Below are positions 49,964 to 60,409 of a stretch of 64,000 nt of DNA, piece after piece. A program made the position numbers and the translations under genes. The notes beneath the pieces are model-generated. The model had not been told where the DNA came from. It searched no databases and saw only the letters and a list, made by a program, of their open reading frames with translations. How positions within the stretch are numbered: the stretch's first letter is position 1; every line of letters begins with the position of its first letter. The stretch spans positions 930,001-994,000 of the forward strand of contig CATNEN010000009.1 of NCBI GenBank assembly GCA_950097015.1, read 5' to 3'. The DNA comes from Macrostomum hystrix. Its lineage: Eukaryota; Animalia; Platyhelminthes.

Positions 49964-51282
49964 TCAGGCATTGCAGAGACTCCGCAGCTCGTCAAACTGA
50001 CTCAGAAGGAGGTTGCCAGTCAGCAGACCCCAGCACTGCAGCCACCCGTCAAACGGTCCGACGAGGCTGTTCGCGCAGTTCCCAAGCAGCAGGTTGTCGT
50101 GAATGTTCAGCTGAGCTCTACTGGTGCTTCCAGAGCTCTGGCCCCTTCGCAAAGTATTCAAGGCTGTGCCATTAAAGAAGGCCTGAGGGGCGAACTGCGT
50201 TCCCTCAAAGTTAACTCCCAGACTGACCAGTCGCATCGCAGTGCCCAGCGCCAGAGCTGGGTGGCTCGACCAGGACGCGGAGTAGAACGTGCCGTTCGGG
50301 AAATAGGTTTCGGCGCCCAGCGCGCCGTCAGACCTGACATACAAGCTGCTTTCGTAGTCCCTCGTGATCAGGTCGCTAAATGTGCTGATGCATTTGCCGC
50401 TGAAAATTTAACAAAATGCTGTTTGTTAAATAAGTTTACTTAAACGCACCTTCTCTCAAACGTGAAATACTTGGCTTTTTGCACATTCTGACAACAAGTA
50501 TAGGTCCTAATTTTTTAGAAGCTTCCGAGTTGTTTGGGGTCAGTAGCGGATTGGTAAAGCGACGGATTCTCGATCGTTTCTCGATTGTACCAAATTATGC
50601 TCAATACCTTCAGCCCCACAGAATATTTTGTTCTTTACATATAAGACAAGAATTTGATAAGCAACCTATCAGCTGACAACATGTACAGCGTCTTAAATTT
50701 CAGCATCGTATTGATCCCTTACGCTAAGTTAGATGAAAATCTCCCTTGGAAGAAGACGCTGTATCCAAGGCCATAGAAGAAGTAGCGATAAAAGCCAGGT
50801 GTGGCAACCTTCACGTAGGAGCCGCTCGAGTTTCTTAGTAGGACGCCATCAGACGCGGTTCGCTGAGCGACATTCACCGGTTCCGCAGGGTACAGTGACG
50901 GATTGGCTAGGTTTTCATAGCCCTTTTTAAAGTTGTAAAACAGAACCACCCGTGACGAAAAGCTGAGAATTTGCACAGCAGTTGATGGAGGGACCAACTT
51001 TCGACGCACGATGATCCCAGAGCCGCAGCTGCCACTAAATGACGTTAAATCCGACTGGAGCAGGCTGGAGCAGGCAGCGCTCTCTGTGAGGTAAACGGAC
51101 ATTCGGCATTCACGGCTGAGAGTGCACCGTAGCACACACTCAGGCTCATTAGGCACAGTTTCCGATGCCAGACCAATGGGTGTGGATGGGCAGTTGCGAG
51201 TCAACCGCTCGAACACAGCGAAGCACTCGTTGCACGCGGCCGCACCGCCGCAAGCGAGCAGCAGCAAGCAGACTGCAAGCAT
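49964..51282 (-). CDS. Secreted PAN/apple + LamG/concanavalin-like lectin domain protein, 2 exons (51282-50723, 50399-49964)
   Basis: Signal peptide MLAVCLLLLACGGAAA; ECVLRCTLSRECRMSVY..AC PAN pattern; LLLG..FDGWLQCWGL LamG-like end; phase-2 junction keeps frame. Confidence 0.72.
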
Positions 51283-53608
51283 CTCGCAAGGCTTGGCCAA
51301 ACAGACAGCCCAGTTGACTCCAAGCTCAGTTTTATTCCCTTAAGCTTACGAAGTGAATTCAAACGAAGTTCTAAGCGCACAGAAATACATTTCTTAGCGA
51401 AACAAGTCTGGAAGCCTTGTTTGCAACCCAATCAATAGTACTATGCTTAAACAATTCCCAGTTTGACTTGCGCAACCAACGCGAGTTTATTTGCATTGCG
51501 TTGAGTTTCCAGGCAAATATGCTTGCCATCTGCAAGGAAACGAAATCAAAGCTACTGCCGATTGGATCTGGTTCCACCAAATCCACTTCCACTCGTATTT
51601 GCCTTGCCACTCGGGTATCTTTTTAAACAACTGCGTTTGTTGACTGTATCGCACAGTCGTGTACTGAAAGATATTCTATTAATCAGAGATCCATGCATGA
51701 CAGGGATTCTCACTCGGTGGAAATTTATTGAATTTATTGAATTTATTGAATTTCTTGAATTTATTGAATCTTACGCACCCAAAATTTTATCTATTTTTAA
51801 TTAAACGACTCATCCTTTCGAAATTGATTATTTTCACAATGATTGTGGCAAAGCCGCGAGTTGTGCCAGAAATAAAAACATTAACTTCAGAACTAGCTAT
51901 CAAGTTTTTATTGGGACATGTTTCGCCTCGAGTCATATGCAGGCATCGAAGGCTCTTAATTCATTCGATCAAATGCATTCATTTATTTACAAGAAATTCA
52001 GTCTTCATTCTCTGATCGTCATCGATGCCGCAATGCGTTTATAGGCTATGATCACCCCAGATGATTAGGCCATGATCACTCCGGAATGAATTGTTGGCGA
52101 GGTCACGAATTCGGTATCGGTGGATGTTGCAAATCCTGCCACTGCCAGCACTCAGCAGCAAGATCGGAGACGAGCTTGCAGACTCCCCTTAAGAGTGCAA
52201 ATAAATTGGCATTACCCCTAAAGTTTCAACTGAAAGTGCAAGCTTGCCTGGTGTCTGCGCAAGTAGCACGATGCCAGCATTTTCTATTAAAGTTTCTTGA
52301 GTCCCATTAATGATTGGAAGAGCTGTTGTGGAATATTTGCAGAACTGAAATGGCACATCTGCTCTCCGTGATGATAGACTTCCCCGTGGCTTCCCTGCAG
52401 CCCCTATATTGAAGATGCTGAGGTACAGGGGATCGGAAATCATGAGTTTATTATAGTTTATCGATAATTTAGTTACTCGTACAGAGCGTGAATTGTTATT
52501 TCGATTTTTTCGTAATTTAAGTGCTTTTTTCCTTTGGCTAAGAGAATAAGTTACTCAAGAAAAATTTTCTACTGTGTTCAACGCCTCGAGAATACCAATG
52601 CTATATGAGAGTTCTGGGGTGGAATTTAATAAATTGAAGAAACAGAGCAACTTATCAGTTTTTTCCTGTGTTCATGTGCGCAGGCATGCAGTGTAGCAGT
52701 TCTAATAGTATCCCAGCACATACTTTCGAACTCAATTTGACTTAAACCGATTTTGTGCGCAGTTTCAATCTGCAATGTATATATAATAAGCTCATGGATT
52801 TTTCTTTACTGGAACTATAAAAGCGGATGTCAACTTAGGGCTCTAAAATGGTGCCCGATGTGAATTCTCGAACCAAACCAACTGAAGTCAGCTAGGTAGC
52901 TGGTCGATCTAGCCGACTAGTACAGCCGAGACATCTCACCCCAGTCCTTCCCATGCAGTATCGACCAGCTACTGCAGATTTCAATCGGTTTGTTTGAGAA
53001 TTGACCTCGGGCCCCATTCTAGAGCCTTTAAGTAGGCACGAAATCCCATCGCATCCCTCTCGATCAGGGTACCATACATTCTTTATAGAGCGGTACTTTA
53101 GGTACTTCGGCAGCCTCCTTTTCATGCCTTTATTGGCGTTCATCGCCAGCAGATGTCCGCCGTCTAGGACTTGACCCACAAACCGGTCCATGTCACTGCC
53201 CAATCAAATCGCCTTATTGTCGTCCTGTCCTGCATTGCCTTGAGAGGGGAATGAACGCATGAACGTTAATCAATCTTTCTGTCTAAGTCGATTAAAAATT
53301 TACAATTGTAAAAGTTTGTCAAATTATTTTCTAATTTTTCTAATAACTTTTGTAACATGCCTAGTTGCACAGGAATAGATTACATATCCATCATATACAT
53401 GAGGTCATCTGAATTATCAATCCCCTCGTTACTGATAACTAATCTTTCGGCTACCTTGCTTATTAAAAACAGTTCACAGTATTGATTATTGTTAAAGTTT
53501 TAAACAATCAACAGCTAGATACTTTCCTGTTAGTCTTTATGGAGAATTTATAAAGGTATTTGTTTAAATTAGTTATTTAAAAAGCTTATTCGTGCCTTCG
53601 TGAGATAT

Positions 53609-54624
53609 GGGTGTGTATAATCTATGGGTCTGGGCACACTGGGCTCACTGGGTTTAAAATAATAAAACAAAGTATATAAGTTCGAAAAATTACTAAAGGT
53701 TATTCTGATATCGCTAACAGTAAGAAAATCACTTATAATAAAAATTTTCGTATTCTAATTTGTAACCTTGCGCTATTTTTTGCTGACACTTGATTTTGCC
53801 GTATTTTTATTTTTTTAGCGTGCCAAAAGCTAAAGCTGAAACTATGAGGCCGCCATAGCATGCAAAATATACAACTATTAAATTATGGTTTTCATTTATT
53901 TTTCATTCATTTTTTGTACACTAGGCATTTAAATTTTTTTATTAAAACATTTGTTTCGAAATGTAACTTGTACGTTTTCAATGTTTTTGTCTTAAAGTTT
54001 TTTACACACTTAGCATTTCAGCATACTTTATTTAAATTGTGCGGATATTGCTACATTTTTTTGTAGTTCTACGGTTCTGTTTTTTTTGTTTTTTTCTTTT
54101 CTAACCAGTCGGCAAATATTTTCCTATTTGCTGGGCTCCACAAATTAGTTTTAACTTTCTAGTCAGCTCTATATGTGTTCCACAGCGTATGTATTATCCT
54201 TACTTTTGTTGGTAAATATACGTAATTGGCAGCTTGTTGGCACGGATTTTTTTCCATGCCTTCTTCTTTAACAGAAACTATTAGAAACAAAAATCATTAC
54301 AAAGTAAATCATTTTTATAATTTACCAGCAAACAAGTTGAGTAATTACTACAGCTTTCTCGTTGCTTTTCGAGAAAAAGTAAAGCTTTCAGTTGAAAGCA
54401 AATATTTTATCGAAAGGAAGTTGAAAATCGTTGTTAAAACATTTGAGTTATCAAGTAAAGACGTAGCAATTTAAAATAAACGTTTCTGAAAATAAAAAAT
54501 ATTTTTATATTTTTCTCTTCTTGCATTAAACGCTGATGAATGTAAAGAAATGTATTTTTTGTTATAATGTTTCAAACCCAGTGGTCCCAGTGTGCCCAAT
54601 GCGAGCCCATGTTTTATACACCCC
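53609..54624. mobile_element. Non-autonomous DNA transposon, about 60-bp TIRs, 10-bp TSD (Mutator-like)
   Basis: GGGTGTGTATAA...TGGGCACACTGGGCTCACTGGGTTTAAAA mirrored at 54560-54624; CGTGAGATAT duplicated at 53599-53608 and 54625-54634. Confidence 0.8.
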
Positions 54625-56544
54625 CGTGAGATATCAAACTTTTTTAACTGTATAACTTCAACTTTAGGACTGATAATTAACGTAAGTCCGCTTTAGACGT
54701 TAATAACTTAAACCCTATTTTATACCGGTTATAAATCATTATATCTGCTTAGTAGCGCAAGTTTTTTGTAAACATCAACAAAATTTAATAACTGTTATTG
54801 CTAACTCGATGTACTTGGCTAACAATCATCAGAACCAGGCCTTTTATTAAAAAAAGTTTTTCTGCATAGTTTGTTTTTATGCTGCAGTTTTTATTTGTGC
54901 ATGGTGCATTTTAAATTGACAATATAAAACTATACTGTAGGAAGTGACAATGTGACATTAGGGTCTTTGGGGGTCCTAGCATTTTATTCACATACATAGA
55001 TCATATGAATATGAACTCTATACATATCCAGACTCCACTCCAGATTGATAATAATATACCTTGAATGTTAACTTGGGCACAACAGTCTTTGCAGGCCCAG
55101 GCCAAGTTATCAATAAACTGGGCACCTTCTCAGCATTGCAAATGCATTTGAGCACCCAGCTGGCATCCACACTGCAGGCAAGCAGCCTGTGGGTGGCAAA
55201 CCAACAAATAGTAGCCAGCATATCAGTTGTCACGGCTGCCAGGTCCCTCATCGTGAGGTCCAGTTGGCATAGCTCTGCAGGCGGATGCAAATCACCTACT
55301 GGAATGATTGTTGCAGGAGCCTATGGTTGTCCAGCCATTTCTTTGTGCGCTGGAACAAATTTGAAACAAGAAATAATATAACAAACGAAAGCATAGTTAT
55401 GCTGTGGGGTGAAATGTGTGGAATCAGCTTAGGTTAATCCAAATTTTCCAATTCAATAGTTACTGCCATAACAATGTTAAGCAAAGTTTGTACATCATCT
55501 TTAAACCAATTACATTATTATGTTTTTTATTAGAACTATAAAACAAACTTTAACAAAAATATTTTTTCATTTTTTCCCAGAAAAACTTTAAACCATTGGT
55601 GATTAAAAAATGGAAGACTATTTTTTCTGAGCAAAAAGGATCAAAACAGAAAGATGTTTGTTTTGTGCAAGAATTACCTAAAATATGCTTTGCTTAAATT
55701 ATAAAACTGCTAACTTACTTGCTCATTTACTTCCTATCCCTCTTATTATCTTCCTATCCCTCTCATTATAGGTTACTTCTTAATCTTGGTTTAACCTTTG
55801 CAATTTAAGCTTATTATTTTAACATAGTGCCATTGCCATGGGATGTATAGCATATAGCAAATGGTACTGAGTGCATAGCTTTATAAGCAAATATGTAGCA
55901 GTTAGCCCAACAATTTATTATTAAGACTAATTAGCAAAATTAAAGAAGTGATGTGTTAGTCTTTATTAATTAAAAATGTTCATTTATATTTTTAGATAGA
56001 ATTAGAAGCTTTTTAACAAGTAACAACAAATAATATCTATACATAGCTATCTTATCTATATTACATGTAGATTATAGATCCTAAGTAATGATTGTAAAAA
56101 TTATCAACATGATAATCAAGGCATGCCCCCATGCCGCATAGGAGCCTGAGTTTATGGGCCAGGGGCTATAACAGGTCCTTGGAAATATAGAGTGCTAAAA
56201 AGTGGCAAAAACATTAACAAAAATTAACAATAAAGTGCAAATAGTATAATAGTGGACTGAAGTGGGACCTTGGTGCGAGAGGCAAACACGTTAACTGCTG
56301 TGCCACTGACCCCAAAGAAAATATTATATTCAAGTTAAAACAGTGATACATAGTTAAACAAACATTCTAGAAGTTGTCTCTGAAAATCCATTTTGAAATG
56401 AATTTCGAACACTACAATTGATTATATGAATCTATACAAAAATATTTTTGGACCTGTAAATAATTTATAACTTATCACTGAAGATCCCCCAAATCGCAGC
56501 TTCCCTGGCGCCAAAAGGCGCCTGCGGCAGCATTTTTGCTGCAG

Positions 56545-59016
56545 TCGCGAGCCCCGCCTTCCTCATTGCCGCGGCTGATTCTGCTGCCTGTTACTCTGTG
56601 CGTGCTGACCGCGCTGTCAGCAGCTCTAGTCTCCATCCAGGCTGGAGTTTATGAGCAGCTCATGCGGGGCGGGCTGGGGCGGACGGCCTGGCCAGGCTCC
56701 GACGGCGCCCGCTACCGCGCCTGGATGCCCGCGTCCGAGCGGCTGCGCTACCGTCACCTGGTCCGCGAGATGTTCGTCTTCGCCTACGACGGCTACATGC
56801 AGCATGCCTACCCGGCTGACGAGCTCAACCCGATTCTCTGCCGCGGCCGAGGGCCCGACCGGGACAACCCGGACAACATCAACATTAACGACGTGCTGGG
56901 CGACTATTCGCTGGGCCTCGTGGACAGCCTGACCACGCTGGCCGTGATTGGCAACGCCAGCGAGTTCCGGCGAGCAGTTTGGCTCCTGGCGAGCCGGCTT
57001 AGCTTTGACTCCAACTGCACCGTGCAAACCTTTGAGGCTGGCATTCGCGTTCTCGGCGCCCTCCTCAGCGCGCACCTGCTGGCGACGGACAGGTGGGCCT
57101 GATTTGAAATTCATTTATCTATTGCGTTCTTGGCGTTAAAAAGTCGAATTTTAAAAATTCTCTAAGGGGATGCGCCTTTGCACCCGAGGCGAGGGCCAGA
57201 CATGGCGGCCCAACCAATCAGTGCGCATCAAGACAACTAACTACTGCTAAATGGATAACAAGATAACAAGATAAAGTATAACAAGGCCTTTTGGCCTCGG
57301 AGTACCGCATGCCGTGTGGGGCAATGTGCCTGCACTGCAAAGTGCACGGACACAAAAATGTTATTCACAGAAAGTACGAAATTTAAGCATTTGGCCTTTA
57401 ATAGTGCATGTTATGCATTTGACCTTTTAATGGTCATGTAATGAATTTCACATTACGTGTGAAGCATTTGACCTTTAAATGTCCACTAGCCGTCTGCCGG
57501 AGCTGCGCATCCCCGGCTACGACAATCAGCTGCTCCTACTCGCTCGCGATCTGGGCGGCCGCCTTCTTGCCGCCTACGACCGGTCGCCAACCGGCATCCC
57601 GCATCCCCGGGTGAACCTGCGCCGCGGCGTGCCCGATGGCGGCCGCCTGGATACCAACCTGGCCGGCGCCGGCTCCCTGCTGCTGGAGTTCGCCACCCTC
57701 GGCCGTCTGGTTGGCGATCCCACTTTCGAGAGAGCCGCCAGGCGCGCCGTGGCATCTCTATGGGATCTGCGCTCCCGCGTCACCGGCCTGTTGGGCAGCT
57801 CGCTCAACCTCACGACAGGCTCCTGGCTGCACGAGGGCCTCTCTGGCCTCGGCGCCGGCTCTGACAGTTTTTACGAGATCCTGTTGAAGTCGGCCATCTA
57901 CCTGGATGATCCGGCGCTGGGCAGCCTGTTCTCTCAGGCTCTGGACAGCGCCGCCTGGCATCAGCGAGCCGGCCGAGCCGACTGTCTGGCAGGCGTGGGG
58001 CAGCATCCCATCTGGCTGAACACTGAGGTGCTCACCGGACACCTGGCCAATAGCTGGTGCGATGCGCTGCAGGTAGGACTTTCCGATTGGCGAACTCATC
58101 TATGGCTAGCTTCATTATATCCGATTGGCATCCTATCTCTGTCTCTGATTGGCTAGATCAGGAGGTCAGTGCATCCTATCTCCGTCTCTGATTGGCTAGA
58201 TCAGGAGGTCAGTGCATCCTATCTCCGTCTCTGATTGGCTAGATCAGGTCAATGCATCCTATCTCCGTCTCTGATTGGCTAGAAAGTCCCTCGCCCGCAA
58301 TGCACCGCAGGCCAGCTGGGGTGCCGTGCTGCTGCTGGCTGGCCGGCTTGACGAGGCCGTCTGCCTGCACGCCTACTTCGCCAACCTTATGCACCGCTAC
58401 AAGCTGCTGCCCGAGCGCTTCAACTGGCGCCTCCGCCAGCCAGAGGTGCTGTTCAGCCCGCTGCGGCCGGAGCTGGCGGAGACCAACTACTTTCTGTACC
58501 GGGCCACCCGCAACCACCACTTCCTGCATGTGGGTGCCGCCATGGTTGACAATCTCAACAAGTGAGCCGCCTTTTCTGTCCTTTTCTAGGTGTTATTTCT
58601 GTCTATGCCCACATTGCACTCACCTCTTCTGCCCCTCAATCAGATACGCCAAGTCCGCCTGCGGCTATGCCACCCTGCACAATGTGCACAACCTCACCGA
58701 CCTGGAGGACAGGCAGGAGTCCTTTTTCCTGGCCGAGACCGTCAAGTACCTCTACCTGCTGTTTGACGAGTCCAATTGGGCCAACCGCTTGGAGACAGAC
58801 CTGGTCTTTACCACTGAGGGCCACCCGCTCTCCATCTCCCGCTTCCGCGCCCTGCCCGACCCGTTCGCCGGCCTTCTCAATGTGTCAAAGGGCGGCGGCA
58901 GCTGGGCCGTCAGCACCTGCCGCAATGTGAACCAGGGCGGCGAGCTGACTCACCTGTTACCGTTCGGCACCACCCAGTGGCTTGAGTTGGATAAAGCCAC
59001 TGGCTTCACTGACTGA
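56545..59016 (+). CDS. EDEM1: ER degradation-enhancing alpha-mannosidase-like protein 1 (GH47), 4 exons (56545-57092, 57490-58072, 58311-58561, 58644-59016); no genomic ATG before the signal anchor
   Basis: [85 protein letters not shown]; all junctions keep frame. Confidence 0.93.
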
Positions 59017-59569
59017 ATCAAAGCCTTCAAATATGAGCAGTGCCAAATTTGCCTCGAGTCATAGAGCTCATTCTCTGTTTATTTCCTGTTGTCCCAAAAC
59101 TTGTTCTGCCAAATGGTGCCAGTGTCTTCCCTGTCTATTGTACGCGGATTTTATCGCATTGCTGTTAGAGCAAATGGGAGTGGATCCCTGAGATTGCCAA
59201 TCGATTTCCTCCTTCATGTCAAACACGCGCTTCGCCCACCCTGACTCAGTCTGCCTTGCTGTTGAGTCCTGCTCACAGCTTAGCCTGCTCTCGCTACTCT
59301 GCTGTTCACAAAAATGCTCTTTAACGTTTTGCTCTGCCTTTTTATGAGCAGAGTATGTTGTCTATTATGGTGAACTGCTACATCACCCAAAATAAAAGAT
59401 GATATTCACTGATGCTTTACAAGGTCATTGGTTGCGCTCAATCACCATTGTAGGTGCTCATTCGGGTTCTTATTTGCCTTGAAAACTTTTAGTGCGTTTC
59501 GGACTGACGTAGCCTTCTATAACTCAACCAGTCAGGCAATCTAATTCGGCAAGTCTAGCAATCCACCCA

Positions 59570-60100
59570 TCAGCTTGTCAGTCTAGCAATCCACCAATCA
59601 GCTGATCAGCCTAGCAATCCACCAATCAGCTGGTCAGTCTAGCAATCCACCCATCAGCTGGTCAGTCTAGCAATCCACCCATCAGCTGATCAGTCTAGCA
59701 ATCCACCCATCAGCTGGTCAGTCTAGCAATCCACCCATCAGCTGGTCAGTCTAGCAATCCACCCATCAGCTGGTCAGTCTAGCAATCCACCCATCAGCTG
59801 GTCAGTCTAGCAATCCACCCATCAGCTGGTCAGTCTAGCAATCCACCCGTCAGCTGATCAGTCTAGCAATCCACCCATCGGCTGGTCAGTCTAGCAATCC
59901 ACCCATCAGCTGATCAGTCTAGCAATCCACCCATCAGCTGATCAGTCTAGCAATCCACCCATCAGCTGATCAGTCTAGCAATCCACCCATCAACTGATCA
60001 GTCTAGCAATCCACCCATCAGCTGATCAGTCTAGCAATCCACCCATCAGCTGGTCAGTCTATCAATCCACCCATCAGCTGGTCAGTCTAGCAATCCACCC
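59570..60100. repeat. 28-bp minisatellite CAGTCTAGCAATCCACCCATCAGCTGGT
   Basis: About 19 copies ending immediately before the RPL37 acceptor. Confidence 0.95.
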
Positions 60101-60121
60101 GTTTCTCCCGCAGCTCCGGCC

Positions 60122-60409
60122 ATGACGAAGGGCACAACCTCGTTTGGTAAGCGGCACAACAAGTCACACACGCAGTGCCGCCGCTGCGGACGCAAGTCCT
60201 ACCACATCCAGAAGAAGACCTGCTCGTCCTGCGGCTACCCCAGCGCCCGTATTCGCCATTTCAACTGGGCCAAGAAGGCGCAGCGCAGGCGCACCACGGG
60301 CACCGGCCGCATGCGCCACCTGAAGGCTGTGCACCGTCGGTTCAACTACGGCTTCCGCACTGGCCTGACGAAGCCGTGCGCGCCAAAGGCTGTGGGAGCT
60401 AGCGCTTGA
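60122..60409 (+). CDS. RPL37: 60S ribosomal protein L37
   Basis: [40 protein letters not shown]...[14 protein letters not shown]. Confidence 0.98.

Follow-up and report, generated by a model that had tools for sequence, protein, structure and literature searches.

According to the accounts in PMC12582326 and PMC5832876, and to Cheng 2006 as relayed in PMC9851317, all reported flatworm spliced leaders (SLs) end in AUG, a codon that can initiate translation. For Schistosoma mansoni, the summary of Cheng 2006 in PMC9851317 gives 28% as the share of trans-spliced transcripts that have the leader AUG in frame, and counts more than 40 complementary DNAs (cDNAs) that need it for the start of translation. 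The leader of Macrostomum hystrix also ends in ATG (Wiberg 2023, PMC10468722), and in this species 10-20% of genes are trans-spliced, with several SL sites in 0.2-1% (Wiberg 2023, PMC10468722). Here we describe a four-exon, plus-strand gene of the EDEM1 type that lies in a 64,000-nucleotide (nt) stretch of the M. hystrix genome (the window: assembly GCA_950097015.1, contig CATNEN010000009.1, positions 930,001 to 994,000 of the forward strand; all positions below are those of the window unless another contig is named). In RNA, the leader is joined in frame to this gene, the genes for the leader lie elsewhere in the genome, and the gene has no usable ATG of its own. It is very likely that the leader supplies the start codon of EDEM1, and that the protein is targeted to the endoplasmic reticulum (ER) through this borrowed AUG.

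The join was read in assembled transcripts from a single study, in which four runs (X1-X4) contain this stretch; their contigs were compared with positions 53600-59500. Every run contains one contig of about 2.2 kb (4/4) that differs from the window in no letter and skips three GT..AG introns, which identifies these contigs as spliced transcripts of M. hystrix. The match to the window begins at 56499 in all four, and it is preceded at the 5' end by 23 letters that do not come from the window, TGCGAAGACTCAATTTATTGCAT, in three of the runs and by the last eight of these letters in the fourth. The G at 56499 is common to the final ATG of the leader and to the genomic AG, and in the canonical reading of the join the leader, with its terminal ATG, is followed by CTTCCC, the exon starting at 56500. 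This position sits 18 nt past the codon that follows the TGA at 56479, and is thus in the GH47 frame. An earlier note, made from the DNA letters alone, had proposed an SL join upstream of the signal anchor; the phase-0 leader join is indeed seen, and its site, 56499/56500, is 45 nt upstream of the acceptor at 56544 that the note had chosen. The N-terminus MSRAPPSS derived from that choice is contradicted by the contigs, which join the leader 15 residues further upstream. Acceptor prediction from sequence alone may therefore select the wrong AG among several in-phase ones, and three phase-0 AGs do precede the hydrophobic segment here (56498-99, 56516-17 and 56543-44).

The plus-strand frame that carries the GH47 domain is open from 56482 to 57092, and its earliest in-frame ATG in exon 1 is at 56662-56664. 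Both this ATG and an out-of-frame one at 56651 come after the hydrophobic run at 56575-56637 (Table 1). The observations on the DNA from which the earlier note started, namely the in-frame stop at 56479 (TGA), the position of the first in-frame ATG (56662) behind a 21-residue hydrophobic segment, and a phase-0, acceptor-like CAG ending at 56544, all agree with the sequence. Its proposal that the SL provides the AUG is borne out by the RNA join together with the frame, in which the leader codon is the only in-frame start codon before the signal anchor. The lack of an ATG is not unusual in itself, as about 0.39 of 60-codon stretches are expected to have none by chance; the weight of the finding lies in the leader join seen in RNA, together with a frame that is closed upstream and carries conserved GH47 sequence downstream.

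The leader has a total length of about 36 nt and ends in ...TTATTGCATG, with its AUG directly before the GU of the donor. A 24-mer from it (the G included) is found nowhere in the window with up to three mismatches allowed, and has 29 exact copies in the genome, all of them on contigs other than that of the window (C9). With its genes on other contigs, the leader must be attached in trans. In the two copies that were read, ACGGTCTCTTAC stands before the leader and GTAAGA immediately after it (TTATTGCATG/GTAAGA). The 97-nt unit is predicted to fold with -31.6 kcal/mol (z = -5.0 against shuffles) into three stem-loops, in which a helix between the donor region and the 5' end of the leader is followed by two hairpins, and the single-stranded AUAUUUUUAG between these last two hairpins resembles a U-rich Sm site. 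In its modelled fold, the leader-encoding unit thus has the anatomy of an SL RNA, and a search of Rfam matched no family at this locus. The leader is the one described for Macrostomum SL RNA (Wasik 2015, Wudarski 2017, Wiberg 2023), with the same end, ...CTCAATTTATTGCATG, and no difference in the leader.

The genomic arrangement of the SL RNA genes goes beyond those Macrostomum reports, as the tandem copies stand in the ribosomal DNA (rDNA) unit beside a U1 gene. Their period is 11,645 bp on contig C15; on C17 and C42 it is about 11.6-11.7 kb. On C15, where the interval G000:C15:9700-19699 was read, the unit is the rDNA repeat with 18S, 5.8S and 28S genes, followed by a spacer that contains genes for U1 small nuclear RNA and SL RNA; the U1 gene is at 368-530 of that interval, some 300 bp before the SL RNA gene, and all are on the same strand. 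Dispersed single copies are present on C1, C3, C7, C24, C25, C32, C37 and C38.

EDEM1 requires an N-terminal signal to enter the ER, and GH47 enzymes work in the secretory pathway. Hydropathy was scored on the Kyte-Doolittle scale in a 19-residue window with a threshold of 1.6. Residues 27-47 of the leader-started protein reach 2.52 and form its sole segment above the threshold, the maximum elsewhere being 1.36. The flanks have net charges of +4 on the N-terminal and +1 on the C-terminal side, from which the positive-inside rule predicts a lumenal GH47 domain. A GH47 protein started at Met56 would lack any hydrophobic segment (its maximum is 0.06). Because without the leader AUG the first ATG is off-frame, and the first in-frame one, Met56, gives a signal-less protein, ER entry of EDEM1 very probably depends on trans-splicing, to judge from the properties of the segment and the known targeting of GH47 and EDEM proteins. 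The same dependence had been suggested from the DNA; the absence of an own ATG before the only hydrophobic segment stands, and the dependence is soundly argued from it.

The assignment to EDEM1 was made by homology searches run exon by exon, the joined four-exon model serving for codon counting and hydropathy only. Pfam PF01532 (Glyco_hydro_47) matches exons 1, 2 and 3 (E = 1.9e-23, 1.1e-28 and 2.4e-8) at collinear profile positions, and a genome scan finds profile positions 392-454 in exon 4. Among solved structures, exon 1 scores best against a chain named 'ER degradation-enhancing alpha-mannosidase-like protein 1' (E = 1.3e-25), with class I mannosidases at about 6e-11 or weaker. A word search with exon 1, which spans proteins of 108-345 amino acids and has full-length Macrostomum orthologues beyond its range, gave 97 short relatives; nine carry a subtype name, in every case EDEM1 (9/9), and no match reaches the first ~70 residues (query coverage of at most 71%). 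The motif CRGRGPD...NININDVLG of the M. hystrix protein also occurs in relatives named EDEM1, and a look-up of exon 1 in the ESM Atlas returned GH47 with no subtype. A profile scan found eight other GH47 loci in the genome. One is an EDEM3-like paralogue (G000:C8:4154514-4158810) whose domain starts with MFQHAYSNYM...CRGRFRG, and another an EDEM2-like paralogue (G000:C39:8893620-8896687) that starts with MFYHAYDGYM...TGADTW. With the EDEM2-like and EDEM3-like loci located elsewhere, the window locus is left as the EDEM1 type, and the gene fits an EDEM1 orthologue of the GH47 family by its sequence. The EDEM1 identity given in the earlier note is thus upheld by the domain, the subtype names and the separate paralogues.

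These paralogues also provide a control for the absence of an ATG. In the open frame upstream of the domain, four of the eight loci have a hydrophobic segment, each after an ATG of its own; the other four have no such segment in that frame, and their 5' exons are presumably elsewhere. A hydrophobic segment with no preceding ATG is therefore seen in the window gene only (0/8 other GH47 loci), and the ATG-less state belongs to this gene and not to the method by which it was read. The EDEM3-like paralogue has its own ATG and a signal peptide, MLLPSRLQASVILLLLLLSC, both within the open frame in which its domain starts. A DNA search of the genome with 56300-57100 returned the locus itself and no paralogous copy.

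The leader ATG and the four exons (Table 1) add up to 1803 nt, or 600 codons and a stop, with no internal stop. Exon 1 encodes residues 2-199 (the last codon being finished in exon 2), which take in the N-terminal flank, the signal anchor and, of the GH47 domain, about the first 95 positions. At the other end, an AATAAA is found at 59391-59396, the contig 3' ends range from 59382 to 59466, and the protein ends in ...ATGFTD. Similarly to vertebrate EDEM1, the GH47 domain stands behind a hydrophobic N-terminal signal or anchor and a linker that is not conserved, the length is about 600-660 amino acids, and there is no C-terminal KDEL. The other EDEM1 genes examined (P0001-P0005 and P0017) encode their own ATG and are dissimilar in the N-terminal ~70 residues. 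In P0002, P0003 and P0005 the gene begins well inside its contig, so that the start ATG is encoded on the contig, and these genes are uninformative on the ATG-less state within flatworms.

Table 1. Features of the EDEM1 locus, in positions of the window
Feature	Position	Strand	Basis or remark
In-frame TGA, outron	56479..56481	+	closes the GH47 coding frame; bars a genomic start codon upstream in frame
Trans-splice acceptor AG in use	56498..56499	+	context cccccaaatcgcag/CTTCCC; contigs X1-X4
Exon 1, 593 nt, phase 0 at 5' end	56500..57092	+	contig pieces, GT..AG joint, Pfam PF01532
Further phase-0 AG	56516..56517	+	no use seen in assembled transcripts
Candidate acceptor of the earlier note, phase 0	56543..56544	+	pyrimidine-rich, tttttgctgcag/TCG; unused in assembled transcripts
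Hydrophobic core L27-I47, predicted signal anchor or signal peptide	56575..56637	+	hydropathy, flank charges
Earliest exon 1 ATG in any frame	56651..56653	+	out of frame (+1); 93-codon open reading frame
First genomic in-frame ATG (Met56)	56662..56664	+	3' of the hydrophobic segment
Intron skipped by contigs	57093-57489	+	GT..AG ends
Exon 2, 583 nt	57490..58072	+	GH47 profile positions 97-250; contigs
Intron skipped by contigs	58073-58310	+	GT..AG ends
Exon 3, 251 nt	58311..58561	+	GH47 profile positions ~300-392; contigs
Intron skipped by contigs	58562-58643	+	GT..AG ends
Exon 4, 373 nt coding to TGA 59014-59016, then 3' untranslated region	58644..59466	+	contigs

In the mechanism that we favour, the EDEM1 pre-mRNA would receive the SL at the AG 56498-99, with removal of the outron and its in-frame stop, and the leader AUG would become codon 1 of the 600-codon frame. 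The product would then consist of a methionine and a 25-residue basic flank, the 21-residue hydrophobic core and the GH47 domain. The core, as a predicted signal anchor, would be inserted N-in/C-out or, alternatively, be cleaved near VSIQA/G, and by either route the mannosidase-like domain would come to lie in the ER lumen. With no suitable start codon in the gene itself, ER-targeted EDEM1 would depend on trans-splicing.

Some points speak against this mechanism. That translation starts at the leader AUG, and that the hydrophobic segment serves in targeting, are steps that we infer from the sequence. Judged by vertebrate rules, the leader AUG stands in a weak context (U at -3, C at +4), and some leaky scanning past it may occur. 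No similarity to other EDEM1 proteins is detectable over the first ~70 residues, whose translation would be backed by their properties and not by conservation. Finally, contigs from a single study drop rare isoforms, and a minor transcript that uses 56517 or 56544, or that is cis-spliced, could have escaped them.

A more far-reaching interpretation is that trans-splicing gates the localisation of EDEM1, with the phase of the acceptor under selection and two differently localised products possible from the gene. If so, RNA that is not trans-spliced, or leaky scanning, would yield no product or, from Met56, a cytosolic GH47 protein that lacks the signal. We consider this unlikely. The presence of three phase-0 AGs (56499, 56517 and 56544) within 45 nt means that any choice among them keeps the borrowed AUG in frame. 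The 28% of in-frame leader AUGs in S. mansoni is near the chance value of 1/3, so that a genome-wide excess of phase 0 is neither expected nor needed. The earlier note had stated that all three ATG-less genes in the window are in phase 0; this is correct but a matter of ascertainment, as the AUG can be borrowed through a phase-0 join only, and does not imply a genome-wide enrichment.

Two other readings are each improbable, to about the same degree. The first places the leader join at 56544/56545 and gives the main protein the N-terminus MSRAPPSS. The site has a good pyrimidine tract, tttttgctgcag, and the correct phase, and its use would be compatible with the multiple SL sites known in a small fraction of M. 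hystrix genes (Wiberg 2023); however, the contigs of all four runs cross 56500-56544 without a break and carry the leader at 56499/56500. In the second, translation starts at the gene's own Met56, the upstream open frame being 5' untranslated region and the protein lacking a signal. This would use the first genomic in-frame ATG and would fit the weak context of the leader AUG, but the leader AUG precedes Met56 in frame with no stop between, and even the out-of-frame ATG at 56651 would be met before Met56. Moreover, the 21-residue hydrophobic segment with its positive-inside flanks is located where EDEM-type proteins need their signal, and the Met56 product would be signal-less, whereas GH47 enzymes function in the secretory pathway.

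The chances are slimmer still that an upstream, ATG-bearing exon is cis-spliced to exon 1 and that the leader form is secondary. Low-depth contigs at 54508-55480 could be taken to favour such an exon, as could the finding that acceptor sites in parasitic flatworms are often common to cis- and trans-splicing (PMC12582326). Against it, no joint from upstream into 56500 is present in any of the four runs, whose contigs show the leader as the sole 5' extension, join no other sequence to exon 1 and do not cover 56306-56498; in addition, no plus-strand coding open reading frame (ORF) is seen in 50000-56400. An upstream exon with an ATG, named in the earlier note as the observation that would count against a leader-supplied start, is thus joined to exon 1 in none of the assembled contigs of the four runs. 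Least probable of all is a non-AUG start (for example at UUG 56536 or at CUG) giving the N-terminus without the leader. Codons TTG and CTG do lie in frame 5' of the hydrophobic core, but the mature mRNA already has a cap-proximal in-frame AUG that makes such a start needless.

At the sequence and RNA levels, EDEM1 of M. hystrix thus shows all the features of a flatworm-type, leader-donated start. It shares with the leader-donated AUG of Schistosoma mansoni, as far as that system is described in Cheng, Cohen, Ndegwa and Davis 2006 (J Biol Chem 281:733) and in the 'slORFs' of PMC9851317, the AUG at the leader end, directly at the donor. As with the slORFs, the join is in frame to an mRNA with no usable start of its own, initiation in our case being predicted. 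In contrast to S. mansoni, M. hystrix is a free-living member of another flatworm order, the Macrostomorpha, the gene is another one, and the borrowed AUG is needed for a predicted ER signal anchor. Flatworms have been known to use this mechanism since 2006, and EDEM1 is a well-documented further example that opens no new question. It does provide an RNA-supported case in which a secretory-pathway enzyme would, if the predicted targeting is right, reach its compartment only when its mRNA is trans-spliced. It also bears on annotation, since trimming the leader or requiring a genomic ATG would place the start at Met56 by mistake and lose the signal. Indeed, it was for start-codon reasons of this kind that the ATG was kept on the reads on purpose by Wiberg 2023 (PMC10468722).

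The surroundings of the gene give no sign that EDEM1 is a downstream member of an operon, as the nearest sizeable upstream ORF (50719-51300) is on the minus strand and the region 54000-56000 has 33% G+C. Trans-splicing at EDEM1 would thus trim a monocistronic outron. The minus-strand ORF encodes 193 amino acids and is cysteine-rich, with a signal-like N-terminus, MAKPCEMLAVCLLLLACGGAAA. About 200 nt 5' of the acceptor there is a dispersed repeat of ~50 nt (56264-56314), for which the genome has at least 343 candidate copies (identity 89-98%), and short RNA contigs cover it at a depth of 120-245. ARAGORN found no transfer RNA (tRNA) in 55900-56500, though the repeat looks tRNA-like, and a search of the whole window against Rfam gave no match.

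On the 3' side, the gap between the end of EDEM1 and RPL37 is occupied by a 28-bp tandem repeat (59552-60100; 19.6 copies, 95% identity), whose unit, AGTCTAGCAATCCACCCATCAGCTGGTC, contains CAGCTG and which stops about 20 nt before the RPL37 ATG. RPL37 (60100-60409) is a single-exon gene with its own ATG at 60122, and an acceptor-like tttctcccgcag ends at 60113. A hypothetical leader join at 60113 would put the leader AUG out of frame and create a mini-ORF of four codons, the stop of which would overlap the RPL37 ATG (ATGA).

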